The notes beneath the pieces were generated by a model. It did not search any database, was not told where the DNA came from, and saw nothing but the letters and a program-made list of their open reading frames with translations. The position numbers and the translations under genes are program-made. This document shows positions 5,661 to 52,200 of a stretch of 64,000 nt of DNA, piece by piece (positions within the stretch are counted from its first letter, which is position 1; every line of letters begins with the position of its first letter). The stretch is taken from contig NC_059440.1 in the NCBI RefSeq assembly GCF_021028975.2, forward strand, positions 29,388,001 through 29,452,000. The letters are read 5' to 3'. This DNA comes from Sphaerodactylus townsendi. Taxonomy: Eukaryota.

Positions 5661-7390
5661 TTATGTAGGAACGACAATATTCTTGGCTAACAAAATGAGG
5701 AGGGCAAGATCCACGTTGCCACCAGCTTGCTCAAGGGCCTCGCTGGCTTCCTGGGGTGTGAAGCCTGCTCTCGTAATTTGAGCAATGTCCACAGAGGAGA
5801 AAAGTGGAGGCCGAGAAGGTGCAGAATCCATTTCTGGAGAGCAGATGTGCAGCGCAGCTGGTTCAGTGGCATCCGAGGAGACCGGCACTCCAGGCTCTCC
5901 TGGGGGAAAATCCAGAACCCTCCAAGATTCAGTGCCCCGCGTGAGGTCAGAGGGAGTCTGCTCCACAGCTTCGTCGCCTGCAGCATGGTCAGGAGACAAG
6001 CACGGAGATAACATTTCAGTGCACTCACCACACGGAGGCGGTTGGGAGGCTGCGGAAGATCTCCGAACAATGGAGCTGTCCCAACCCAAAGGCTCCTGGA
6101 TGAGGAGAGAATCTGGTGGTTCCAGGGCCTCCTGCCCGTCCTCTGCTCCAGCCCCAGAGAGCCACTCCCCTGCAGAGGCTCCAGCCCCAGGACACGCCGG
6201 CACCCCTTCGGGAGAGGAGAGTTCCACATCCCGGATGTCTCGGCCACATCCACGCTCCTCTTGAAAGGCAGCGTCCTCTTCAGGAAAGGTCCTTGGCTGA
6301 TCAAGGCTCTGGGGCCAAGAAGCCTTTTTGTAGCTGGCAACCAGAAGCTGATGGAGCTCCTTCAAGGCTGACGTGAGGGAGGGACAAGCCCCTTCCGCCT
6401 GGTGGCCCACCTGCCCTTCAGGAGGAGGAGGAGGAGGACCTGAGCAGCCGGCAGGGGCAGCCATGTCTGCGGATTCCACTGCTGCTCTTCCAGGCTGCCC
6501 CAAGTCCTTTGCAGAGATAGGATCAGCGGAGAGAGAAGAGTCAGGCTGGGATGACTGGGCCTCCATCATGGAGCACTCCGAGTTCACGGCAGACAAACCA
6601 AAGCGCTGCTCTTTCAGCTGGCTCTCCGCAGAAATAAGGACCTGATCTGTGACCTCCACTTCCATGACGGTTTCATCCCCAGGAAGCTGGTGTGGCGCAG
6701 ATTCTGGCCTCTGGGTCCCCTCACAGGAAAACTTCCACCCCTCAGGCAGAACGTGATCCATGGCCTGCCCTCCACGTGCAGGGGATGGGGATTCACCCTT
6801 GGCAGACAAATCATCTTGGCTTCTGGTTGTCTCGTCTGGGGGCTGTTCCGGGCCAAGCTCTTCATGGGGACTGGGACCCATTTGGCTCAATTTCAAAAGC
6901 GAGGGAGGCAGCAGACCAGCGACGTCTCCTGCTGGGGCATAACTACTCCCTCCTGTTTCTTCCAAAGGAGACTCTAGACCTGGACCACTGCCCTTAGCAC
7001 AAGATGGCATTGGAGTGCCAGAAGTGACCAGTTTTGCACACGTGTTGGGTGAGGGACTTTTTGTATGACGGCACGGTTCTGTTGCAGCTCGAGAAGCATC
7101 AACTCGGGTGAAAGTTTCACCATCAGAAAGATCCAGCAGTCCTTCCCTCCCGAGAGCGGCTGGGCACTCAGGAAGGGATTCTACAGACTTTGCAGCTGTC
7201 GGGTTAACAGTCTGAGCCAGACTGCACTTGTGGGAGCAGAGGGTGGGAGCAGAGGCGGAGCGATCGAGGGGCCGCCTGAAGGACTTCCTGGTCTTCAGAG
7301 CCACTTCGGGAAAATGGACTGGATGCTGAAATCCATCAGAACTCGGCAACAAAGACTGTTTCGGTGAGGTAGTTTCTTTGCCAGTAATCT
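5661..7390 (-). CDS. RSC1A1: RSC1A1 (RS1)-like coding exon with C-terminal UBA domain; also the terminal exon (exon 10) of DDI2
   Basis: 1730-nt open frame. The N-terminal LPSSDGFQHP matches human LPTSDGFNHP, and the internal ALKELHQLLVAS is conserved. The C-terminal FSSVDIAQITRAGFTPQEASEALEQAGGNVDLALLILLAKNIVVPT matches the human RSC1A1 UBA end. Preceded by a strong pyrimidine tract and CAG acceptor at 7393-7391. First in-frame ATG is only at 7010. Confidence 0.9.
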
Positions 7391-7869
7391 CTGTGCGGAG
7401 GGAGGAAGAGAGAAAAGAGCTGCATCAGATTCTGAACATGACCCAGGGTGCTGGTGCCACTTTGACCAGAGAGGGGCAAAGCGCACTCAGCGGCCTTACT
7501 CTGACCAGCATGCATCTGGAGTGAGGGACAGGGTCAAGGGAAAGGCTCTCACCTGCCTCAGCAATTCAAGCACACTTAATAACCAGACAATCAGAGAGAC
7601 CACAGAAGGTTTTATTATTGTCATTTCTCAAGAAATTGCACTAATGTAAAAAAAAAGGGGGGCTCTCAAATTATTTTGACAAAGACGATGAGTTGTGTTG
7701 CCTCGGTTCTTCCTCTCCTCAACGAGACAGAAAAGCACAGTTGGCTCAGCAGCCCGCTAAGCGACACACTCTGACCAGCTCAACTGTGGCCCTCCGTGGG
7801 GCTCACACCTGAGGCCATGAGGTCTTGCTCCCTCCTCCCAGGGTGCCGCTGCTGCTCTCCCGCATCCAC

Positions 7870-7990
7870 CCCCAGTCCTCGCAGAGCTCTCTCAGCCTCA
7901 CCTGCCTCACAAGTGTGTCTGTTGTAGGGAGAGAAAGGGAAGGAGTTTGTGTGTTGCTTTGAGACTCCTTATAATTGAGAAAAGTGAACA
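7870..7990 (+). mobile_element. Squamate SINE 3' fragment (same family as 45017-45298)
   Basis: ctctctcagcctcacctgcctcacaagtgtgtctgttgtagggagag..ggaagg resembles the reverse complement of the SINE at 45017-45298. Confidence 0.6.
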
Positions 7991-8439
7991 ACAGGCCTCA
8001 CCTGGCCGTCCGCCCTCAGAAAAGTCTGCTTTGTGAGGTAAGATCAAAGCAGCAGTCCCAGCAAGAGATGGCTTTTGGAGACAGCTTATTCAGGGCTTCA
8101 AAGGGAGCCACCAGTTCTGAGGTCTGTCTTGTACCTTCGAAGCCTCCAGCTCACGTGGCAATGTCTGCAGTCTGACTGCGGAGGCCAAGAAGCCAAAGCC
8201 ATCAACAGGTGGGCCCGTGGCACAAGACACCAGCACTGGGAGCAGGCATCTGTCTGAAACACTTTCTGGTTTGATCCTCTCTGACAGGCAGAAACCAGAG
8301 CATCACACAACATGCAAGCCAGCTCCGTGGCGATCAAAGGAGACCAAGGAAGTGGGAGGAACCGTTCAGAAACCGGGGCTGTGTGTAAATACCTGGTCTG
8401 TGGCCCACTCCAGCAGCAGCAAACCCCACACTACATGCA

Positions 8440-11400
8440 TCAAGGCTTCTGGTGCTCTGTTTCGAATTAGGAGACAAACACACCAAACTTGTGTTAGCAC
8501 ACTGCACATGCACAGTCCGGGCTCGCACCCTCCCCCGTCGCCTTTCCCAACCCGGCTTCGTTCAAGATAGGAGGCCCTCTCGATTTGGGGGCTCTTCCGA
8601 GAGCAGCTGCTCTGCCGTCCGTAGCACAGCAAGGCCTCACCGCAAGAAGAACGGCCCCTCTCCAAGGAAGGCACACTCTGCGCAGGCAGCGGCCCGGCTG
8701 GTTCCTGCTTTCAGCTGCCGCTGATGCGAAGCAGGACAGCCTTGGAGAGACTGCCAGACTCCACTCCCTTCTGCCACTGGTGCTGCCTTGCTTGCAAACT
8801 GTCTTCCTTCTGTCCCCCTGTCCTTCAGTTTGACCATGGAAACGAGGCCACTCCAACGGGACACGGGAACTTTCCAGGGGAATCAATCCCTCCTGATGCT
8901 GAGGTGCAGAACTCAACTGGAAATGGCTCAGGCACCAAGGCAGACAAGCCAGCCCACGGCTTCAGCCGCACAGGGCCCTCTGCAGAAGGGCACCCCAACG
9001 GGCAGGCTCTGCACGGAGCACCCTGCCAAAGCCCTCAACCCACAGCCCGCCACTTGCTAGCCTGGCCCACTACGCTGCCTTGCCTTGCGCAACCTGACTC
9101 TCTGGCCAGGCTCAGCTTTGCTGCCTGCCTCCTGACGGCTGCCCTCATCAAGAAAGAAGCTTCAAGAGACCTCAGGACTTCCTTGAAAAAACCTTCCTCC
9201 GCTTGCAAGTTACACAAGCTGGGCTGGCTGGTTCTGGCAAACTCAACAGGCTCCAGCGTGCCTGGACGTCTCTCACCGCAGCCCTTCCCTGCCACTCCTT
9301 GCAGACTGGCAGGCAGCAGAGACATCTAGAGCGAGGGAGAGCAGAGAACTGCCTGAGAACATTCTGAGTGCCCCTGGCTGGACACCAAGTCTCGAGTACA
9401 CCTCAAGTCACAACAGTGCCCAAGCAGGCAAGGGGCTTCCCTGCCCAACAGCCAGGAAGTCAGTGATGGAGAGAGAACAGGGAGGTGCATCTCACACCAC
9501 CTCAAAGATGCATCCCAGGTGGATTTCCCCAACAGAATGCATCTGGGCTCAGACTGGCGGGTGGGAAGTCCAGCTCTTAAAGTAATTGGAAGGGAAAAGG
9601 AGCGCACGGCAGCATTCTTCCCAACGCAGCAGAAGGAAAGCAGAAAAATCCATTTCAAATATAACCCTATAAATTGCCTACGGACACTTGACGGTTGCGG
9701 CATTTCTGGAGTACTGGGGGTACAATCCTGCTCCTTCGCTGGGGGGTGATGAATGAGAGTCTGCTAAGAGCAGCCTATGATGATAAGAAACTTGATTCTC
9801 CTATATAAAAACCTGGCACCCACCCAGAGTGCGAGCGGCCAGAGAATTCCACCAGGGCCAAGACAGGCCGGATGGTGCAGGGCAGCTCCCTTGTATAATC
9901 CACTACAGTTATCTTCTGCTGAAGCAATCACTGATGGACAGACCAGAACACGGCCAGGCAACCTGCCTGCTGCCTCCTAGGCTGCTGCCCTCTTGGCCAA
10001 GAAGCACTCCTGTGGTCTGTCCTGTCTTGACCTGACTTGCTCACCAGGAAGCCCAGAGGCTACTTTTCTGCTGACCTGTTGTTTTTGTTACACCAAACTT
10101 TGGTACTTCTAAGGAAGAGCAGAAGGAAGGAGAGGCTGTGCTTCACACACCCCATGACAGGCCAGCTGGAAGGCCTCAATGAACGCAAGGCTAAAAGCTG
10201 AAGCTGCTCAAATACCAGCTTGAACGGTGAGCTGCCCTGTTGCATTTTGTTCTTGAACTTCTCTGAGAGCGCTCCGGCGGCTGGAGCACAAAGACAGACG
10301 GTCCTGGGGTAAAGAGAGTCTACTGATGTCCGGACAAAGTTACTCTTGTTCACTTGGCCTTCCTGCTCTCGGAGTCGAAGATCTCTGTGGAATTCAGCTC
10401 TAGCTACAGTTTTTTGAAGGGAAGAGGACTGATGAATCAGAGTATTTTAATATACCTTCTGAGACTGAACCTTGTGGGGTTAGGCCTATATTATCTTATG
10501 GATGCTTTTCGGGGGGGTGGGGGAGGGCACCACATCTGGATCATGCAAGCTGAATTTCAAGAGATTAAAAGGAGTGCCTTGGTCAAGATGGTGGACTAGC
10601 CAGCCACCAATGGCTTCCAGCCTGACAAACAATAGCCAGCAAGGCAAGCCGGCACTGGTAAGACCCGGATCCACATTGACTGACCCTCGGAAAGGACCTT
10701 TTCTGCCTCATTTGCTGCACTGGATTGTTACCAGATTCAGGCCCGCTAATCAGGGCACAAACTGAGCAGTCATTCTAATAAGGCACCCAACTGCTAATGA
10801 GCCTTCCTCCCGCTGGCTGTGACTTGGCTAGGCAAGCGGCGGGAGTCTACTGGCCTCCGGAAACGCCTGGTGCTCCTGCCTCCTCAGGCTGCGCATCACA
10901 TGCAATCATGTGGCACAACCACACCAAGAAACAGCAGCATTGAGACAGTTCTAGGAAACTATAATGTATACAAGACAAGGGGGGGGTGCAACTTGAATAA
11001 CCAAACAAGCAAATATTTGCACACAACAAAGCTATCAGTCATAGATTATGTGGTTTGTGATAAATTATAGTCTATGACTGCTAGCGTGTGCAAATATTTG
11101 CTTGTTTAGTAGTTCTAGGAAACTGCCTGGAGGGAAACTAGTCCATCTCCTTTGGCCACACTGGGCTGCCCACAGGAGAGGTGGCCCCGATGTGCCTCCC
11201 CACTCATCCTCTGTCTACTCTGGGCCCTTGAGGTACCTGCTTCCTCGACAGATTTTTGGATAGCCTCTGCCAGTTCGTGGTCTGCAATCTCTTCTGGCCT
11301 GACATCCTCCCGGCCAGCCCCGTAAGCCAGCCTTGCGCACTCCGGGAGCTCCCCCTCTGGCAGGAAGGTTGTCTGAGAGCCGGTGGTGCCAATCACCAAG

Positions 11401-14400
11401 ACATTCTTCTTGAGGTCAATGGAGCACTGGGGGAGGGACCAAAGACGGAGAAACTGAGCCCTGTGACAGTAGGGGACCCCCAACCCTTTAATGCCCGCAA
11501 GACCCTCTGTGGAGAGAAGATGGGGGGCTGCCACCCAAAATGGCTGCTGCAGGAGGCAGAGCTGCACGTGACACCTCCTCGGTCGCTTTGCAAAAGAAAC
11601 AGCTCAGCAGCCACACTGGACTGGTCCTGGGTTGACTTTGCTTGGAAGCCAAGCCCTGGGAATAGGGACACAGATGACACTGGGGGGGAGGGGCTCCAGT
11701 GCTCCGGGCAGCTGCAGACACAGCTTTCCAAGACCCCCTCCTCTCCCCCTTCTCCCTCCAAACAGTTCAACTTCCACTGATTTAAGCATGCCTGCCTTGG
11801 CAGCATAATGAGTGTCTCCTTAAGGTGCTGGCTGGGCAGACATGGGGACGGCCAAAACAGTCATGGAAAAGGGCATTTGACTGCCCTGTGTGCCTCAGTG
11901 ACTCCATAAGTGGGCCCCACCTGGTGTGAGTTTTAAGCAGGAGAAGAGTTCAGATGGACTGCAGAGGCTCTGACCCGCTCACCTGGTGCCTCTTCAGCAT
12001 ATCCAGTCCTAGCAGCATGTCCATGGGCTGCTCTTCCAGGATGGAGAACGAGCAGGGCAGGAAATCCCCTTCAATCTGGACCTGAGCTGAAGCAGACGGA
12101 GAACTGCCTGTGAGCTTCCCAGAGGCTCCTGCCCTGGCTCCACACCGGCAGCCCCTCCTGTGCCCGCTTACCTAGATGCACTCGGCCAATGATCTTCTGA
12201 GTGCCCACGCCCTTCGCAATGCCGGCCCACCGCCGGTCCACCAGTCTTATGGGATGTTGCACCTCTCAAGCAAGCCAGTTCATGATGGTCATCTGAATTC
12301 TGAGACATACTGCATTGTCAAAAAGATTACAATCACTTGAGAGAGAGAAAAACCTATTGCCTTTTGCAAGGTCTTCCTCCCAATCGGGCATTTTTTCATA
12401 GAAGCTAAAATAAAGCTTCAAAAAATAAGCATACATGTAAGATTCATTTGTCACAGCATGACACCAAATTCTGGCAATTTAAAACAGCATTGGGGAACAA
12501 AACACCCCCAACACACAAAGATATAGGCACTGACTGCATCCCCCGCCCCCCGGTTCTAACATACTGGACATCCCACCCAAGTGTGCTTTCTGCCAAGCCA
12601 GCCGTCCGTCCCCCCGACAGTTTGCCCCAGCCAGCCCAGTCCGCTGAAGCAACAGATCCTTTCCAGTGCTGCTCTTGGTGGTCATAAGAACATAAGAACA
12701 AGCCAGCTGGATCAGACCAAGGTCCATCTAGTCCAGCTCTCTGCTACTCGCAGTGGCCCACCAGGTGCCTTTGGGAGCTCACATGTAGGATGTGAACGCA
12801 ATGGCCTTCTGCGGCTGTTGCTCCCGATCACCTGGTCTGTTAAGGCATTTGCAATCTCAGATCAAAGAGGATCTAGATTGGTAGCCATATAAATCGACTT
12901 CTCCTCCATAAATCCTGTCCAAGCCCCTTTTAAAGCTATAAAGGTTAGTGGCCAAATCACCACCTCCTGTAGCAGCATATTCCAAATGCCCACTCAATCA
13001 CACGTTAAGTGAAGAAGTGTTTCCTTTATTAGTCCCACCTTCTTTCCCCAGCATTTTCAAATTGAATGTCCCTCTGGTTCTCAGTATTGTAAGAAAGAGA
13101 TGAAAAATGCCTCTCTGTCAACATTTTCTACCCCATGCATAATTTTCTTGTAGGACTTCAATCATATCCCCCCCTCAGTCAGCCTCCTCTCCAAACTAAA
13201 GAGTCCCAAACGTAGCTGCAGCCTCTCCCTCATAGAGGAAGGTGCTCCAGTCCCTCAATCATCCTTGCTGCCCTTCTCTGCACTTTTTTTCTATCTCCTC
13301 AATATCCTTTTTGAGATGCGGCGACCAGAACTGGACACAGTACTCCAAGTGCGCGGCTCCACTGCTTTTATATAAGGGCATGACAATCTTTGCAGTTTTA
13401 TTATCAATTCCTTTTCTAATGATCCCCAGCATAGAGTTTGCCTTTTTCACAGCTGCCATGCATTGAGTTGACATTCCCATGGAACTATCAACTAAGACGC
13501 CCAAATCCCTTTCCTGGTCTGTGACTGATAGCACTGACCCCTGTAGCGTGTATGTGAAGTTTGGATTTTTTGCCCCTATGTGCATCACTTTACATTTTGC
13601 TACATTGAACTGCATTTGCCATTTCTGAGCCCACTCATCTAATTTATCAAGGTCCGCTTGGAGCTCTTCGCAATCCTTTGTGGTTCTCACCACGCTACAT
13701 AATTTTAGGGTGGTGAGAACCACAAAGAACCATAATTTTAGGGTCCTTTCGCTAGAGACACCGTGGACTGAACCCAGGACCCTCAGCAAGCCAGAAAAAG
13801 GCAGGCGTGCACAGCGCTGAAGGCAGGCCCAGGGCAGAGGGCCCCCAACACCCCCGGTCGTGCTGTGCCTGAGCCAGAAGGAAAGAAAAGGGAAGGGGCG
13901 CCCCCTCCAGCCTCACCCGAGTCCACAAAGGCCTTCACGGGGTGGCCGTTCACCTTGCAGTTGATGTAGAGCATGACCACCTGGCCGAAGCTCTCGGGGG
14001 CCTCTTCCATGGCAATTGTCATGTTCTCCTCGATGTTCTGCTGCCTGGAGCCAAGGGCCAAAGAAAAGGCTCAGTGCTCCTGAGGCCTGACGCTGCTCGT
14101 TCCTGGGCGGGCCAGGCAGCCTGTCTTCAGGTGGATGTGTGGCCCTGGGGTGGTGGTGGAGGCCAACCCTCCATGGGCCCAGAATAAGGCGCACGGGCTG
14201 TGAACGGGGGCTGCCGTGCCCCCTCGCCCACCCAGGACACATGGGGCTAGAGGGAGCCCTGAGGTGCAGGAGGCTAAACTGCTCCCGTGCGCCCTCTTCT
14301 CCCCTCCCACCTGCTCCAGGGAGTGACCATCCCTCGCCAGACAGCCACTTTACTGTGCAGAGATCCCCCAGCTCCCAAAGGCCCAGCTGGGCAGCAGAGC

Positions 14401-17400
14401 CAGGGCTGCCCTGCTTAACTCCTGGGTTCAAACTAGATCCCCCCACCCCACAGCATCGAGGCCTGGCCCCTTGGGCTGGTTACCGGATGTCCTCCTCGAT
14501 CTTTGCCTGAGCCTCCAGGTCAAAAGGGTCCGCAGAGAACAGACGGAGCCTCTCCTGCTCCCGGCGGGCCCGATCCTGCTGCTGCTCCACCAGGACCTGG
14601 GTGAACTTCTCTGCAGACATAAAGAACCCAGGCAGGTTGGAGGCCAGAAAAGACACCCATCAAGGCGGCAACCATCGCCCACGCAGAAACATTCAAAAAA
14701 CATTGTGGTAGGAAGAGACAACCCCCCTCCCCCCCGCACCCAAACTCCTCTCCCTAGCTGGAAAAACACTGCCTGTCTTCTGATGCTGTCACTCAAGCGC
14801 TTCAACCAAACAGCAAAAACAGAATCCTCAAAGAGGTGGCTGCCCCTGTGTGAGATCTGTGGGTAAGCAAACACCAGAACTCTTTGCAGCTGCTTTTATC
14901 ATAGCGACAGGTGATTTGAGGGCTCACTTAAAGTGGCAATCCCCCCCCCACACCCCACACACAAGATTTTGCTTTGCTGAACAGCCTCAAAGCCCAAACT
15001 TTGATTCAGCCTCCTTGGAGAACAGCCCCCATGGTTTCCCAACGGAAGAAGTGGAAGAGCGCCATTGTGCCAAAGCTCCACTTCAGCCTAACCAGAATGC
15101 ATTCCTTGCTGACGTAACATTCCAGCCGAGGAGCTGCGGATCAGTGGGTGCGCATCTGCTCGGCATGCAGAAGGGCCCCAGGTTCTATCCCCACCACCCT
15201 CGATGGAAAGAACTGGTCATAGCTGATGTGGAAGACCTCTGACTTGAGACCCTGGAGAGTAGCTGCCGGCCTGAGCAGAAAATACTGACTCAGATGGTTT
15301 GGTTCAGTAAGAGGCAGCTTCGTGGCCAGCAATCACCCTTCCGACAGGAGCCACTCGGCCCCCACATCGCCACCGCAGCAGGAGAGTGAGATGCTTTCAC
15401 ACATACCAGCGAAGGAGGACTGCCCCAGGATGCTCCCGGGGTCACAGCAGGCCTCAGCCCCAGAAAGACCAGACGGAGCAACGGTTCACTACTTAGCAGT
15501 GTTATTCATGGCACCCATGTGCCCCCTTCCCAAGTAACCCTCCCACCAAATGCTCCAGCTTCTATCAAAGGCAGAAACTACTGCCCACCTGCAGAACAGC
15601 CCACCCCTGCGAGCCAGGAGGCAGCCCCCCAGTGGCTGGAGAAAAACCCCCTTGGCTGAGTGCGACTTCCTGGCCAGCATCCTCAGCCTGATGGCAGGTT
15701 CCAAAGGGAGAAACCAGTCACCTCCACACAGCCAGGCCGAGTGGGGTGGGGGTGGGGAGCCTCCTCTGCCTCGCCCAGCCACTCACCAAGGTCTCCGCTC
15801 AGCAAGGCCTCCGCCAGGGGCGGGTTGCGCTCCTTCAGCAGCGAGAGCTCGTGTGGGTTGGACAGCAGCATGTCCCGGAGGAGGCCAGGGTTGTCCAAAC
15901 CTGGAGGCGCGGGGGGGACTTCGGGAGGAGACGCGCGAGAGGGCGGCCCAGGCTGTTGTGGGGGCATCGGTGCTGTTTGGGCCGACGTCCCGGGCACCGT
16001 GATGCTGCTGAAGTCTATCCGGGGCAAACCTGGGGAGAAGGAGAAACTCCTCAGCAGGCTGATGCCGCGCAGCCCACCCTGAACCAGGAGGTGCTGCAGA
16101 AGGATCCCCCCCCCCCCCGGGAACTAATCGCCTTTGTATCTGCACCGAGGATCCCCTTGGAAGCAACTGGCTCCATCCTACCATCCTAAGGAGACACTTT
16201 TCTTGGACCACCCCAACATTCTTGGTATGGTCGCATAGCAGGGGGATGGGGGACATATGGGGCCAAATGTCCCTGGGCTGTGGCCATTTTGTCACATGGG
16301 GGGTGATATTTCACACCCCTCCTCCTTCCAATAAACTGGGTCCATAAACTGACTTCAAGACTTGGTGCAAAAAAACCCTGTTTGGTCATGGTGGGGGAGG
16401 GCAGCTGCCTGTAGGGGGGGGGGACTTTTTTGCACCGAGCTCCATTTCCCCTAGATATGCCTCTGGCCCACCGCAGAAGTGGCGGCCCCCAAAGCTTGCT
16501 TTCAAAACCTGAAAGTGTCCACAGACGTAACAAGGTCAGCCAAGAACCCTGCTTTAAGCACAGCTCTTTCCACCAGGCGTCTCCAGGGCGCACGGCAGTT
16601 CGGGCTAGCTAGGGAGATAGTGAACAGACCACAGTTAGTCTTGTGCTGCTCTAGTCCTTCTGGGTTCTTATGCCATTTTGCCAGACTTGAGATGAGAATC
16701 GCAGATCTCTTTTGCCAAGACCACCCAGGGCTGTGGGTCCGTGGCGAGCCCGCTCAACTCCCTAGAACCTGGACTGGGGCTGGGTCTTCAGGCAAAAAGT
16801 GCCTGCACTTGAGGCCTCAACAATCCCAAATGCTTTCCACAAGGGTCTGTAGACAGCGCTCCCACCCAATGTGGAAAAGAAGTGTCTCTCCCCCCAGGAC
16901 CAAGAAACCTAATACCCTCCCTCTTCAGATGCTTCTGCAACGGCACCTCCCCTTTCTACTGCAGGGTGTCCAGCCAGTCCGCAGAAGGGGCCTGCATAGG
17001 ACCCGAGATCAACAGGTACTGCGGTCGGGGGTGGGGGAAAGGCAGCCCAACCCCAACCCCAGATTGAAGTCACAGATAACAATACTTTCACCCGCACTTA
17101 TCACAGTAGCTTCTGATGACATGGCAAAGCGAAACCAGAGAATCAAGGAACTGTGCCTCAACCTGACCCAAGGGTGCTGCTCTCACCAGGGAAGGCAGCT
17201 GCCGGCCGTTTTTCTGCATTCTCCACTTGCTGCAATACCACCACATCTCCATCTTTCAGTCCGTAGGAAGCCAGTGATCTATGGTTGTCAGTTAGGGGCA
17301 CCTCTGCATAGACAATCTGGAGGAAAAAGGGAGGCTAGTGAAAAGCTGACCAAGAAGTTCCAACTGAGCAGAGGGCAGCTTATGGTCCAGATCGGCCTCT

Positions 17401-18426
17401 CCAGCAGGCTCCCAGCCACGGCCATTCCTGTGCTCACTGCCAATTCATTTCACTGAAGCCCCTTCGGCTTGGGAGGGTTAAAGGGGCTGAGGTGCCACTT
17501 TCTGGACACAGGGCTGGCAGCCGGAGCTCCCCTCACTGCAATTCATCCAATCCCACCCCGTTTCTTTTTCCACGTAGGTGGCCCTGCCTCGAATTGACCC
17601 GGAGGACTCTGCTTCCTCAGCAGCCCTGATTGTAAACCGAGAGCTTCGCCCCACCCGGCCCCCAAGCAGCAGCCACCCACCCACCCCCGCCGCAGGGTTT
17701 GGCAGGGAGACACCTGGCAGGAGAAAGGCGTCCTCCGCCCACCCCCATCTGCTGCACCCTGACGACGGTGGTGCCAAGTGGGAAGCAAAGAGCTGCTCCT
17801 CCAGATCCCTGGGCCCTCCCCAACCACCGGGGCTGAGAGGCGGGGCGGGGAAGGGCGAGGACCGGGCGCCCTCCTCCTCCTCCGGCCTCTGCCAACCCTG
17901 GCCCAGCCTGCCAAGAGCGCCCACCGGCCCACACAGCCCGGGGCAGCCCAGCCCCCTCCCTTCCCGCGGCCCCCACCGGGCAGGGCGGAGCAGACCAGAG
18001 CCGCGGGGGGAGGAAGAGGGGGGCAGCCAGCCCAGGCCAAGGAATCTGCCGCGTCCCCGACTCTTAAAATAGCCTCTCTCGCGGGCGGGCGGGCGGGCGG
18101 GCGGGCGGGCGGGGGGGAGAGAGGGGAGGAGCGGCCGCCCCGCCCGCGGGGTCCCGGCCAGCCAAGGGGCAGAGCGAAGGGGGGGCCGGCGGACTGAGCC
18201 CCCTCCCGGCGGGGCCGTGGCGCGGGGCGCCCCCCCTTCCCTTCCCTTCCCTTCCCTTCCCTCCCTCCCTCCCCCCCGGGGCGCGGACCTGGCTCTCGGC
18301 GGCGGGGATGCCGGACTCGAGCTCGCAGAGGGCGCGGAAGTTCTGGAGCTCGAAGTCCGCGTCCACCTGCAGCGAGAAGGTCAGCTCGGAGCGGTCCCGC
18401 CGCAGGCAGAAGACCGTCAGCAGCAT
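8440..18426 (-). CDS. DDI2: DDI2, DNA damage-inducible 1 homolog 2 (UBL, HDD, retroviral-like aspartic protease, UIM); about 401 aa
   Basis: Exons: 18426-18289 ([27 protein letters not shown]..), 17316-17187, 16029-15787, 14610-14484, 14044-13917 (..KAFVDS-G, catalytic Asp), about 12299-12172 (5' part corrupted by indels), 12086-11983, 11426-11237, 8456-8440 (EHQKP*; exon extends to 8393). All introns are GT-AG and phases are consistent except at exon 6. Confidence 0.95.
10947..11124. repeat. AT-rich hairpin insertion flanked by a 14-bp direct repeat
   Basis: agttctaggaaact at 10947-10960 and 11111-11124. Perfect 22-bp inverted repeat at 11003-11024 / 11086-11107, plus an inner 14-bp inverted repeat at 11036-11049 / 11067-11080. 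Confidence 0.85.
12683..13706 (-). mobile_element. 5'-truncated CR1 LINE in DDI2 intron 5
   Basis: ORF2 RT C-terminal part [69 protein letters not shown]. The 3' terminal repeat (cataagaa)2 is at 12683. Confidence 0.93.
15128..15325 (+). mobile_element. tRNA-derived squamate SINE (Squam-like), diverged
   Basis: tRNA-like head (cagtgggtgcgcatctgctcggcatgcagaagggcccaggttc) followed by a gaccctggagag..ctgccggcctgag body. Family assignment is from memory. Confidence 0.6.
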
Positions 18427-32374: not shown

Positions 32375-35300
32375 CTAAGATACAAGGGCGTTTTGACCAT
32401 ACAAAGCAACTCGAGGTGTAGGGGGGCCCGAAGAGGGCAGGCTCCTCTGCCCGGAAGCGCGCTCACTTCCTTGCCCTCTGGGACTTGGCAAGCATTGACT
32501 TTTGGTCTTGCTCTGGTTCCTTGGCAGGGGCTTCACCTCCCTTCCCCATGGCTTGACAGCTGGCTTCTTGGGGGCAGGATCACAAGCGCAGAGGCTTCTT
32601 GGGGCTACGGCATGGGGCGTTGGCTTGGCTTTTTTGGCAGGGGTTTTGGCCGCAGGTGGGGGGGGGCTGGCTTTCCCACGGCGCACTGTGGGGGCCTTGC
32701 GTGGCTTGGGCTTGGCCTCTCGCCGCTTCACCGGGGGGGCCCTGTTCCGTGCTTTTGGCGGGGGCCTCTTCTGCACCCTGCTGAGAGAAGCAAAGGACCT
32801 CAAGCCTGGGGCTGTCTGTTGTGCCTGCATTTTCTCCCATGTTTCTCTGATGGACTCAACCCAAGGGAGCGATGCCAATTTGCGCCACTTCGCTGCAAGG
32901 GCTGGCCCCAGAAGGTGACAAACCACCCCCCACCACCCCGGCCCATTTCTTGTCTTGATGACGAGGCGGGCAGCAATCCCCCCCAGCCCTCGCCCCCGGC
33001 TGCCCCAGACCTTTTCTTGGGAGGGGGCTCTTCCTCCTCAGACTCCTCCTCCTCAGACTCTTCCTCCTCAGACTCAGACTCCTCCTCTTCCTCCTCCGAA
33101 CTGTCCTCTTTCTGTTTGTCTGGGAACAGAACTCCAGGGCTGTGGGGGGCAGGGAATGGGCACGTTGCCATGAATGAAAGCACCCCCAATCTACAGTGGC
33201 AACACCCCTGCGTCCAGGAGGCGGGCAGAAGCCAGCCCTCCCTGCTTGCCACCCAGCTGCGGGTTGACGGGTTTTGGGGCAGGGGGTTGGGGAAGGCCCA
33301 GCTGCCAGACAACCACTGCTCCCCCACGCCTGGGCAGCACAGTGCAGGAGGAATGCCCCCGCCAGGGGCGTCCCTCACCTGGGGTAGTAGGGGAAGCAGA
33401 GTTGGAAAGTGCCGCTGAAGCCCTTCCCGGAGATCTGCTCCATCCAGCCGTTCTTCTCACACTTCTGCAGGGTCCTCTTCAGTAAGTGGACTGTGGGGCG
33501 GGAAAGAGCAGCGGAGGGAGAAGGCATCAGCACTCCCGCCAGGCAGGCAGCACCCAGCCCTGCGTGCAGACACCTTCCTGTCCTGCCGCCAGCCCACTTT
33601 CAGCATCTCTGTGGCCACTGCAGCCTTCAGTCAAGAAGCCAAGCAAGCGCAATGGAAAAGGAGCCAAAAACAAGGTCAGCCCTTGGGCCTCCTGAACCCT
33701 GCGGGGGCCACACGGGGGCAGGAGGAGAGCTGGGAGGGTCCTGCAGGATCATCCAAGTCTGGACTGCTCACTCTTGAGAACATTTCTGTCTCCTTTTCCC
33801 AAAGCCTCTCTGGAAGTGGACTCCACAGTCTCTTGGCGATCTGGTCCTACACCAGATCTCTGTCTTTTGGGCTCCCCTCTCAGCAAGGTAAAGCAGGGAG
33901 CCATCCCTGGGGAGCCGCCTGGGCGGCCGTGGAGGGGCAGAGAGCCAGAAGAGGCCAGGATGGGGGCAATCGTCACCAAGTTCTTTCTGAGCCGCCTGCC
34001 AAAAGCTGGCCTTTCTCTCCACATTCACATTCCTTCATCTGATTGGCTCCCAGCACCTGCTGCCCACTCGCTTCACCAGGCAAAGCCACGCCAGAACCCT
34101 TCCAGGCACAGACTGTGCTCGGAGCTGCCCACGGACCTCGTGCAGCAACCAGGAGACACCACATCAAAACGAAGGAGCCGGGGGGGGGAGGGGGGGCACA
34201 CACCAAAAGCATGGCTTCCAAGGGGCTGGAGAACTTGACTCTGACTAGCACACTGTTCTCTTAACAAGACTGGCACGCACACAGTCAAGCTAAAACCTAA
34301 GAGTGGGGTGGGATAGCCAGAGCTACGTGCTCCAAGTACAAGGGAGGGAGGGAGGGAGGGAGGAAAAGGGGTGGGAAAGCACACATCTGCACAGGGCTTC
34401 TCCTGAGGAACATTCAGAGATCAAGAGTTGCTTTTCCTGGATTGTGCAGCATCACGGGGGGGGGGGGGGGGGGGAGGGGGAACAGGGGTGTGAGGACAGA
34501 GGAGGCGCTGCATCCTTTCTCCGCAGATGTGCTGCATAGCGTACAGCAGGGCCGTTCCAAGCCTGGGGAACTGGAAGTGGTGGTGGTGGTGGGGGGGGCT
34601 CTTCCTACCCTGGAGGCTGGTGTTTGTCCCTGGATGCTTCTCTAAGACATATTTCTTCAGGGCAGTGGTGGAGCAGGTCTTGGGCTCATTCATGGCCGCG
34701 ATGGCAGACAGGATCGCATCCTCCATCAGGCTCCCGCCCAGCAGTGGCTTCTCCCCTGATTTCTTCAGCTGGTTTGCAAAGAGAAAGGCACAATTAACAG
34801 CCGGGGCAGCAGCCTGTGATCCAGGCAGGCCACTCATTGGGAGAGGGTCTGGTCCCCAACCTGGAATGTCCCGGAAGCCCCTTTGCCCGTGATCTGCTCC
34901 AGCTGCCCCTTCTCCACTGCTCTCTGCAGGGCGTTCTTCAGCAACTGGGGCCTGTGGGAGAGAAGCCAGGATGGGGGCATCATTTGCAGGGAAAGCTGGA
35001 GGAGGACCTTTGGCCCATGAATCATGAACTTGGGGGACTCACTGACACGAGATGGAAAAACTGATCCTGGCTTTACATGGGGACTAGATACATTGCTGGG
35101 AGACGGGTCCATCAGTGCCTAACGGAAGTCCCGTGGCTGGAGGCAGCACACTGTTGGGGCCAGCGAGGAAACCACGACCTCAGTCTGTGCTTGGCTTATG
35201 GGCCTTTTAGCACATCTGGCTGGCCACTGTGCGGAGGCAGCAGTAGGTGGTCCATCCAGCAGAGTTTGTGGGGCTGCTCTTTGCATATGGTGCCCCCCCA

Positions 35301-49299: not shown

Positions 49300-52200
49300 T
49301 TAATTATCCTCCGACTCCTCTTCGGCTTCCCGAAGCCACGTAAAGAAGGCCGTGACTGATTTAAGCGCTACACCTTTCCCATTCTGCTCTGCTGGGTCTT
49401 TGCTGCTTTCCCATTTGTAGAAGGCATCCTCTGATATCACTTCCTCATCGTACAGGCAATCGAAAAACATCCGTAACAAATCTGCAGGAAGAGAAGAATA
49501 TCCTCTGAACAGCATTTATTGGCTCAGCATCACATGAATGCATGGAACTGGTCCATCTAGTTCTGGACTGAACTGCAGTAGTTCTCCTGAGCCCAGTGCA
49601 AAGTATCTTTTCTGAGCAATATTGATGCCCAAGATTCTTAAAACAGACAGTCTAAGGAACAAACCTGGGATTGCCTGCCTGCCTGCACACCAAGCAGTCC
49701 TCACCCACTAGGGATGGATCACGGTCTCAGTTCAAAGTGTCACTTGCAGAACTGCAGATATGGTGAAGGGAATCCTGCCTAGCTTATGACGTCATGCAGA
49801 CTTAGAAGGTTCTGACATTGCAAATTTGAATGGTATGTTTAGACCAGGGGTAGGGAACCTGTGGCTCTCCAGATGTTCAGGAACTACAATTCCCATCAGC
49901 CCCTACCAGCATGGCCAATTGGCCGCAGGTTCCCTACCCCTGTTTTAGACAATGCTGGCACCCCGTTCTGAATATATTTATTAGTGCTCGGAGTCTTTTA
50001 GGCACATGAGAATCCAGACCCCCCCCCCCCCATCACATAAAGAGAGATGCACACCTGTCTAGCACTTGAGCAAATACCAAGTCCTAAGAGATTATATATT
50101 CCATGTATCCCCTGGAGGTTGTTTGAAAGGGGGGAAAGAAGGCTTTTGCACAGATGATGGGGTTCATAAGGCTGAAGCAGAAGGCTGTGCATGTGAACTT
50201 TTGTCAGGACACCCATACCTTCCTTTGAAGAAACTCTGAGCTCTTGCGGCAGGAATAGCCCTTTCTTTCCCTTGTTAAACTGGGACTGGGGAGAGGAAGG
50301 ATGTCTCCTCTGGGAGTTTCAAAAAAATCAATTACTTTTCAACATACTTCCAGCAGGACAATACACGGTCAGGCCTACAAGTGGGGGGGGGGAGGGGGGG
50401 GGTGATGGGCTCAATTTTTTTTCCAGCAAAACCTCTCTGATAGCAGAAGCAGAGTTATGTAACACAAGTCAATGTTCTGTCAGCCCTACAACCAGAGACG
50501 TTCACTGAGCAGCGAGACAACTTCTGCCCACACTGCACAAAGCTGACTTAAGAGTCCAAGCAACACAGGCTGTCAAATGGGAGGACACTTACTAGGAGGC
50601 TGATCAAGTTTTACTATTGATGCTTGTAGTGCGTAAAGTGCTTGTAGTTCCTTCTCCGTGTCCGAGCCTAGGTACTTAAGTAAGATCGGCACTCTCTGCT
50701 TGATAACAGCAGTGTCCACTCGTAAGCTAGAACTATCCACTGAAAAGAAAAAGAAGAGACCTGCGTCAGGCTGTGGCTGAGGGGAGGGCAGGCCAGGTCT
50801 GCCTCCAGAAGACAGGACAATTGCAGAAGACTTCATGGGAGTTTGGGCCAACCACATGACAGACAAGATGCGCTGAGAGAAAGTGGCTGCCATCCCACCC
50901 TGCCCTCAGACACAAAGATCAGGAACTGAGACACACTTGTGATACTAACAACGCAGGCTCAGTTCTCAGCTTTACTGAGTTGCTGAAATAGACAACACCA
51001 CGTTTCCCACCAATTAAACACTTGTCGAGCCACATAAAGATGCTCAAGAACACCAAGTGATATGGTGACTTTCATGACCTAGAAAATGAAAAGTGAGAAA
51101 GCACCCATGCCCACACAACAGGAAGGAGAAAGTCCTCTTCCCCAAAGTGAACANNNNNNNNNNNNNNNNNNNNNNNNNNNNNNNNNNNNNNNNNNNNNNN
51201 NNNNNNNNNNNNNNNNNNNNNNNNNNNNNNNNNNNNNNNNNNNNNNNNNNNNNNNNNNNNNNNNNNNNNNNNNNNNNNNNNNNNNNNTTTCCAACAATAT
51301 AAGTCTGGATGAAAACCAACTGCTGTACAACAATACCTTGGACTTACTTGGGAAGGTGTCTTCTCTACAGTATGGCAAAGTAATCTAGCTGGTTTAGGTC
51401 ACATCCCCAATAATTTAGGCAGGGCTATGTAAATTTTTATGCACCCTCTTCAGTATAGCCAAGTCCTGATCGACCTTGGTCCCAAGATAATTGTTCCCAC
51501 TATCCTGGGTGGGTTTCTGGATAACTTTGCCCTACTGTAGATGTGCCCCCTGTGCACAGAGCAGGCTGCCCCTGTGCAGTCTTTAAACAATTCCCCTTAT
51601 CCTCCTCCGTCAAAGAAGAAGGGGCTGTGGGGACCTTTCCTTTCTCCATGCTGAGCAGATCTGGTGGACAAATTCGCACTCAGCTTTGAGAAGCCCAGAG
51701 CAAGGATCAAAGCTCCTGCCCTGAGTGAGCAGGAACTGGAGAGAGGTCGGCCTCGTCAGCCAGGAGAGGATGCCAAAAAAACAAACACATAGCCCTGCTG
51801 GAAATATTGGGGGCGTGACCTAAACTAGATGGATGAGTGAAGCCCTATGGTAAAAGATGTCAACTGTTCCTTCCCCATCCTCAATTGACTTGGATTTAAA
51901 GTCGTGATGATTCTTTGTTTATGCTGATAAAGGACTGATCTGCTTTGATTCAAAGAGGACCCCCAAAGTCCACTGTGCCAAAAGCCTGTGTCTCAGAGCC
52001 CAACTAGATGGGATGAAACATGGGGAATCCTGATCTAACTCCCATCATGCCACTGTCAAAGGCTGTTTGCAGGAAAGAAAGCTCCCAAGCACTCTGGGGC
52101 CAACAGGGATCATTGCTGTCACCCAGGAGGAGAAAGGGCTGGAGGCTGAGACCGCTTCTCCCCTCTATGCTGAGGTTATCAGGGGTCCCCCGAGTGTCTA

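Follow-up and report, generated by a model that had tools for sequence, protein, structure and literature searches.

DDI2 is the protease that activates NFE2L1/NRF1, and the literature describes it as having lost the C-terminal UBA domain of yeast Ddi1. In fungal Ddi1 and in Mud1 of S. pombe, a UBL domain and a retropepsin-like protease domain precede that UBA. Mammals have RSC1A1, a single-exon gene in the DDI2 3' region, whose product RS1 is said, following work of Osswald in 2005, to be a separate protein. Here we analyze the 3' end of DDI2 in the gecko Sphaerodactylus townsendi, within a stretch of 64,000 nucleotides (nt) of NC_059440.1 (positions 29,388,001 to 29,452,000; hereafter “the window”, to whose own numbering all coordinates refer), where the gene lies on the minus strand and its last exon is orthologous to RSC1A1. 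A first-pass annotation of this stretch had read the RSC1A1-like frame as an alternative terminal coding exon of DDI2, reached by skipping a short exon that carries the DDI2 stop codon. The best explanation of the whole, and one that we favor with some confidence, is that the window holds a jawed-vertebrate DDI2 3' end: an mRNA that includes the stop exon is observed, and skipping of that exon would fuse the UBA to the protease in frame.

The evolutionary tie between the two genes, which the first-pass annotation suspected had been noticed before, is indeed in print. Siva et al. (2016, Sci Rep 6:30443; PMC4962041) place the ancestral DDI2 UBA within the vertebrate RSC1A1 polypeptide and describe the insertion of a new gene, RSC1A1, between protease and UBA; isoforms are not mentioned. 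Our search for literature on the DDI2-RSC1A1 pair found nothing besides this paper. In contrast to the insertion view, the data described here fit a continuous long isoform with an ancient stop cassette exon, and a separate start codon that came later.

Long isoforms are annotated in other vertebrates, among them Gekko japonicus (XP_015268109.1, 959 amino acids (aa)), Heteronotia binoei (XP_060115561.1, 970 aa) and Callorhinchus milii (XP_007905422.2, 1082 aa). A query of residues 332-470 from the Heteronotia model matched at least 247 clusters, 120 of which were listed: these are fused models, about 800-1050 aa long, and come from squamates, birds, turtles, crocodilians, platypus, marsupials and placentals. 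Fused models with the same junction, ..EEA^E-N-S-D-K-E-T-T-S.. (caret at the splice point; variant E-x-x-D/G-K-E-T-T-S), are also found in Callorhinchus, Amia, Huso, Carassius, Latimeria, Pleurodeles and frogs, and the Bos taurus entry NP_001422309.1, “isoform 2” (1021 aa), is a curated fused protein. What the window shows is an ordinary instance of an arrangement common to all jawed vertebrates, one that databases already annotate though it has been little studied; it is not confined to reptiles, nor is it new. The system is of no new kind, since RefSeq and Ensembl-derived records already contain the fused isoform for hundreds of vertebrates. The first-pass annotation had presented the fusion as a feature of this reptile, but annotated fused models of about 1000 aa occur throughout the jawed vertebrates, also in placental mammals. 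Its idea that mammalian RSC1A1 arose by fission of the terminal exon is therefore also unsupported: fused models are annotated in mammals too, and what changed is the internal ATG.

The window and the annotated long isoforms are alike in the exon 8-10 junction, in domain order and in the C-terminal UBA; relative to the Gekko model, identity is 85-100% over the DDI2 part and 55% over exon 10. The window differs in an exon 9 of 64 rather than 63 nt, in lacking the internal methionine of most amniotes, and in apparent assembly errors in exons 5 and 6. Unlike the annotated long isoforms of other vertebrates, the fused form in this gecko is one that we infer. Exon 10 has both the sequence motifs and the C-terminal UBA of an RSC1A1 ortholog, sharing with mammalian RSC1A1/RS1 the motifs SLPxSDGF and LDRSxSAP, the SALKELHxLLV helix and a UBA ending in ..LLAKNIVVPT. 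It differs from mammalian RS1 in having Q for M at the start position, and therefore this gecko would make no RS1-type stand-alone protein by ordinary means.

Splice phases and reading frames at the 3' end

Exon 8 (11237-11426, minus strand, as are all exons below) encodes a UIM-like stretch and ends in ..QKSVEEA, with GAG GAA GCA G^GTACCT forming a phase-1 donor at 11237. Exon 9 (8393-8456) is a 64-nt cassette which, with the G contributed by exon 8, reads E-H-Q-K-P-TGA; the DDI2 stop falls at 8442-8440, 47 nt before the last exon junction, and the exon closes with the donor CAG^GTATTT. After intron 9 (7391-8392, delimited by sequence and read contigs), exon 10 begins at 7390 behind a CAG and a 90% pyrimidine tract, the strongest of the gene, and needs one base from the preceding exon. 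When exon 8 is joined directly to exon 10, G+AG gives E, ITGKETTSPKQSLLPSSDGF.. follows, and the frame stays open for 575 codons to a TAA at 5663-5661 (1730 nt; coding part 5661-7390), with 0 stops as compared to 10 and 26 in the alternative frames. On all these coordinates and frames (the phase-1 end of exon 8, the EHQKP stop of exon 9, and a phase-1 exon 10 with a 1730-nt frame and a UBA) the first-pass annotation was correct; its acceptor string had dropped one CT, which is immaterial, as the acceptor itself is confirmed.

Summed exon lengths predict products of 972 aa with exon 9 skipped and 401 aa with exon 9 included, valid only if the defects in exons 5 and 6 of the window are assembly errors; on that proviso, the lengths of about 972 and 401 aa given earlier are borne out. 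With exon 9 included, the exon 9 stop would leave DDI2 without a UBA and the RSC1A1 frame in the 3' untranslated part. With exon 9 skipped, exon 8 would join exon 10 in frame, and the protein of about 972 aa would comprise, in order, UBL, HDD, retropepsin-like protease, UIM-like stretch, about 530 mostly disordered residues with one helix, and UBA. Such a product would have the domain order of yeast Ddi1 and of Mud1 plus a very long tether; unlike in fungal Ddi1, the tether between protease and UBA would span about 530 residues and contain a conserved helix of its own.

Four public runs (X1-X4) were compared with the window as contigs; none is recorded as RNA, and X4 alone behaves as RNA. Over 6400-7390, in exon 10, the contigs of all four match the window with 0 other letters, and the gaps listed over 6400-7911 number one for X1, seven for X3 and none for X2 and X4. 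The S. townsendi UniRef model P0001 equals the exon 10 of the window exactly, save for one predicted internal intron. This concerns a 129-nt in-frame segment at 5900-6028, flanked by G^GTGAGT and by a pyrimidine tract plus CAG, whose removal takes out 43 aa in P0001; it is a candidate exitron, and isoform X2 of Paroedura (P0005) shows a gap of this kind, also in frame, closer to the N-terminus.

Conservation of exon 9 and its inclusion in RNA

We compared seven sauropsid loci, namely the window and six fetched annotated relatives (Heteronotia, Gekko, Paroedura, Anolis, Varanus and Regulus), and added cow and Callorhinchus for exon 9. The phase-1 donor of exon 8 (GCA G^GTAC) and the phase-1 acceptor of exon 10 (YAG^AG AAT ..GAC AAA GAA ACT ACC) are identical in 7/7 sauropsid loci, and in each of them skipping from exon 8 to exon 10 keeps the frame, phase 1 to phase 1. 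Conservation of the acceptor phase, proposed earlier as a check on the exon-skip idea, thus held in the geckos, the anole, the monitor and the one bird. Exon 9 itself measures 62-64 nt in all seven, and its stop lies 45-46 nt from the last junction in the six relatives and 47 nt in the window. Stops less than 50-55 nt before the last junction normally escape nonsense-mediated decay; at 45-47 nt the exon 9 stop is therefore too close to trigger it by the usual rule in any of the seven loci.

Few sequences of the DDI2 locus are as conserved as the stop exon and its flanks. The exon 9 block, including about 45 nt of the upstream intron, is 88% identical between gecko and bird, compared to 82% for coding exon 8, and 85% identical to cow; an alignment is still possible in Callorhinchus, and TGATGCATG and the two splice sites do not vary. 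The end of intron 8 (8457-8502) contains a TGCTAAC branch-point match (8499-8493) followed by a G/T-rich, purine-interrupted tract, with invariant columns across the seven sauropsids and across gecko, bird, cow and chimaera. The pyrimidine fraction of the acceptor tract is 0.60 for exon 9, which is weak, versus 0.90 for exon 10. Exon 9 therefore combines the marks of a cassette exon, conservation of exon and flanking intron together with a weak splice site. A conserved RNA-level signal is typical of regulated cassette exons. As the greater part of the conserved sequence lies past the stop, outside a conserved frame, it looks like such a signal, and the very old conservation of this non-coding part and of the preceding intron end suggests that inclusion of exon 9 is regulated.

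The exon 9 block (8393-8502 in the window, about 6500-6620 in locus L007 and 33581-33702 in locus L008) contains TGATGCATG including GCATG, a GCTGCTGCTG run and an upstream GTGTGTTTGT tract, which we take to resemble RBFOX, MBNL and CELF-type motifs. The idea that DDI2 is a known MBNL/CELF splicing target was dropped: the myotonic-dystrophy matches proved to be a digital object identifier (DOI) string (hmg/ddi223) in reference lists.

Run X4 shows how the exons are joined in this species. Its contigs contain the joints 12172/12086, 11983/11426, 11237/8456 (depth 67) and 8393/7390 (depth 65.6), all GT..AG on the minus strand, and none of these is present in the three DNA-like runs. Exon depth in X4 is 61-121, as compared to 22-34 for introns, and one contig matches 8393-8459 exactly and is joined to 11237 on one side and to 7390 on the other. 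The stop-exon form (8-9-10) is the major mRNA in the X4 sample; DDI2 of 401 aa, lacking a UBA, is therefore the main product in it, and the RSC1A1 frame lies in the 3' untranslated part.

Translation of exon 10 and competing explanations

The first in-frame ATG of exon 10 in the window is codon 127 (7010-7008). Upstream, intron 9 read in the exon 10 frame has a TGA at 7427-7425, 13 codons before the exon, and no ATG in between. At the RS1 start position (..SLEM-P/S-SLP.. in most amniotes) the window has Q (CAG), Gekko T and Paroedura I, so that in place of the M-S/P-S-L-P-x-S-D-G of an RS1 start the window reads K-Q-S-L-L-P-S-S-D-G. Codons 1-126 are nevertheless open in all species compared. 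Their ratio of nonsynonymous to synonymous substitution rates (dN/dS) is 0.33-0.63 over four gecko pairs, versus 0.45-0.51 for the rest of exon 10, and the fractions of bootstrap replicates at or above 1 are 0.056, 0.009, 0.001 and 0.000 for the four pairs. As codons 1-126 contain no ATG, the exon 8-10 fusion would be the only ordinary route to their translation in this gecko.

The internal methionine at which mammalian RS1 starts is present in amniotes and in the salamander Pleurodeles. It is absent from chimaera, bowfin, sturgeon, carp, coelacanth and two frogs, and among squamates from Gekko, Paroedura, the window, Anolis, Varanus and Crotalus. Given its absence from the chimaera, ray-finned fishes, the coelacanth and frogs, the long reading is probably ancestral and the separate RS1 start arose later, an order of events that is read from gene models.

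Several observations weigh against a fused product in this gecko. No contig of X4, the one RNA-like run, contains an 11237/7390 (exon 8-10) joint, and the depth of the inclusion joints (65-67) equals that of exons 6-8. A regulated cassette exon would be expected to leave both inclusion and skipping junctions in RNA, and the contigs of this one run hold inclusion junctions only; contigs lose rare variants and the tissue of the X4 sample is unspecified, so skipping is undetected there and at most a minor form. The fused proteins of other species are mostly automatic gene models, and the open literature that we searched makes no mention of a long DDI2 isoform. A dN/dS of about 0.5 amounts to weak constraint, and the conservation of the 11 codons following the acceptor could be due to splicing signals rather than coding. 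The exon 8-10 junction that the first-pass annotation had asked for is thus missing from these contigs, where exons 8-9 and 9-10 are joined. Of its reading of RSC1A1 as an alternative terminal exon of DDI2, the in-frame join, the stop exon and the UBA are real, and the observed joints are 8-9 and 9-10 only. The exon-skip mechanism is structurally sound and comparatively well supported, with the fusion unseen in the one RNA data set of this species.

These observations could also mean that the fusion is never made in meaningful amounts, an alternative that we consider unlikely but by no means negligible. Exon 9 would then be constitutive, the phase match would be a relic of a Ddi1 with a C-terminal UBA, and exon 10 would be translated alone; the template would be the 8-9-10 mRNA or else a transcript that retains intron 9 or starts within it, and translation would begin at the codon 127 ATG or at a non-AUG codon, yielding a shorter RSC1A1-like UBA protein. 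Constitutive inclusion agrees with the finding of inclusion joints only in the X4 contigs. Separate exon 10 transcripts are weakly hinted at by the depth of intron 9 beside exon 10 (33.6, versus 24.6 and 21.9 further upstream) and by that of exon 10 (121, versus 61 for exons 6-8), contig depth being unable to rank the parts of a gene. In birds, turtles, crocodilians and mammals, the conserved N-terminal motif does open with an ATG, and RS1 is known in mammals as a separate protein. In the window, however, the amniote ATG is a CAG, no ATG follows for 126 codons, and a stop lies in frame 13 codons into intron 9; a start in intron 9 for an unspliced or internally initiated RSC1A1 mRNA was accordingly rejected, given that stop and the lack of an ATG. 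Moreover, in geckos that share this lack of an ATG, codons 1-126 are under the same constraint as the rest of exon 10 and contain neither stops nor frameshifts; the chimaera, ray-finned fishes, the coelacanth and frogs likewise lack the ATG, and the next ATGs past the DDI2 stop open a 1-codon frame and an out-of-frame open reading frame of about 50 codons.

The lack of a usable start codon in the major mRNA, together with the lack of a visible fusion joint, would also fit an exon 10 frame that is untranslated in this gecko, a leftover serving as the DDI2 3' untranslated part, and its protein evolves fast (49-55% identity among geckos). We regard this as improbable. The frame stays open for 575 codons, whereas the other two contain 10 and 26 stops; across the entire exon, every pair compared has a dN/dS clearly under 1; insertions and deletions between species always come in multiples of three; and the UBA and the helix motif keep their invariant residues. 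Still harder to credit is that RSC1A1 is made from the 8-9-10 mRNA by a restart at the ATG two codons past the DDI2 stop (TGA TGC ATG). The invariance of TGATGCATG from chimaera to cow speaks for it, as do Varanus (L005, about 9981-10043) and Regulus (L006, 9819-9881), where this ATG is in frame with exon 10 without an intervening stop, and the Varanus RefSeq model P0006, which begins there. Yet a TAG comes directly after the ATG in the window and three other geckos, and exon 9 is 62, 63 or 64 nt long depending on the species, leaving its frame relation to exon 10 unconserved, and shifted in the window; restart after a 400-codon frame is also normally inefficient. For this species, restart from the exon 9 ATG is ruled out by the ATG-TAG and the variation of exon 9 length over 62-64 nt.

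For the exon 8-10 fusion, a wider proposal can be made, which we hold tentatively and consider possible rather than probable. In it, the 63-nt stop exon would be a regulated switch more than 450 million years old between a short DDI2 without a UBA and a long, Ddi1-like form with one; RSC1A1 would in origin be the C-terminal exon of long DDI2, acquiring its own start only in tetrapods, and all RS1-type function would be exerted through DDI2 in animals where that start is absent, this gecko among them. If so, the textbook statement that vertebrate DDI2 has no UBA would be valid for the short isoform only. Wherever the long isoform is made, the protease would carry a UBA on a long flexible tether, and a single gene, read in two ways, would give DDI2 and the transporter regulator RS1. 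This species is a natural test case, since its separate RSC1A1 start is absent and any protein from the conserved N-terminal part of exon 10 should be a DDI2 fusion.

The UBA domain, the upstream exons and the surrounding sequence

The UBA occupies residues 532-570 of the exon 10 product (5679-5795) and is supported by profiles and a structure model. Against the Pfam UBA profile the region scores E 0.0012 and 19 bits, under the 22.4-bit cut-off. A profile of seven orthologs compared with solved structures identifies it as a UBA by sequence, matching the UBAs of NUB1 (4.8e-8), Mud1 (4.9e-6, ranked 3rd) and yeast Ddi1 (0.005, ranked 6th), and the best single-sequence match among solved structures is the UBA of S. 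pombe Mud1 (E 6e-4). The expected three-helix bundle appears in an AlphaFold2 model of the exon 10 product, built from a 19-sequence alignment, with helices at 532-540, 545-554 and 559-570 and a predicted local distance difference test score (pLDDT) of 90-94. Sequence suggests a UBA of Ddi1 type, as the first-pass annotation had called it. The Mud1 match agrees with that label, but among the 109 sequence matches to the UBA region no Ddi1 of an invertebrate or a fungus appears; of these matches, the ten that have a DDI2 part are fusions from vertebrates, and the sampled ones of 400-500 aa have no protease domain. NUB1 also ranks above Mud1 in the profile comparison. The case for descent from the Ddi1 UBA is therefore one of gene position (PMC4962041) and not of sequence.

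In the same model, pLDDT is below 50 for 421/575 residues, in agreement with the long disordered tether predicted earlier. The sole confident structure in the linker is a helix at residues 338-356 (pLDDT about 81), which overlies the conserved ..SALKELHQLLV.. motif at 6321-6377, recognized by its invariant columns as well as by the structure model; L342, E344, L345, H346 and L349 of this ALKELHxLLV motif are invariant. The modeled exon 10 product can fairly be described as a UBA on a long disordered tether.

A tblastn search with P0002, the Gekko japonicus model, in which PF24669 and PF09668 are found, placed DDI2 exons 1-8 (18426-11237) at 85-100% identity; boundaries were then read from the sequence. 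The exons of the window were searched singly, while junction-level searches used database proteins. Exon 1 (coding part 18289-18426, 98% identical to P0002) has its ATG at 18426 and holds the UBL start. It is followed by exons 2 (17187-17316), 3 (15787-16029) and 4 (14484-14610), and by exon 5 (13917-14044, 100% identical), which has the catalytic FVDSG at its end. Exon 6 (12172-12299), placed by tblastn, has an in-frame stop in the window and is spliced 6-7-8 by the RNA-like contig; exon 7 (11983-12086) is delimited by the X4 joints 12086/12172 and 11426/11983. The UBL, the helical HDD, the retropepsin-like domain with its catalytic D-S/T-G-A and the exon order are those of a DDI2 ortholog, with exon 6 corrupted in the window.

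The lesions in exon 6 (a -2/+2 indel pair, substitutions and the in-frame stop) are most likely assembly errors. Over this exon, the contigs of X1-X4 differ from the window by 7 other letters and 4 gaps, and over about 11800-12310 the contigs of all four runs depart from it by 34 other letters and 29 gaps. In addition, we infer that one G is missing from the G run of the window at 13916-13918, at the end of exon 5: at its loose end at 12296, the RNA contig has five G, as compared to the four predicted from the window exons. We treat the gene as intact because the contigs disagree with the window and the RNA-like contig splices 6-7-8 and continues into exon 5 sequence.

High-copy repeats lie at 7882-7986 in intron 9 and at about 10965-11026 and 11530-11562. 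The first is probably a SINE-like (short interspersed nuclear element) copy. In the DNA-like runs, the summed contig depth of the bin at 7793-7991 is 150,000-540,000, and partial contigs and loose ends are numerous there. A scan of intron 9 for bacterial promoters and terminators, a method not suited to this genome, returned nothing. Elsewhere in the window, 51154-51287 is a run of N (an assembly gap or mask). In the fetched gecko and monitor loci, DDI2 is flanked by DDOST upstream and PLEKHM2 downstream.

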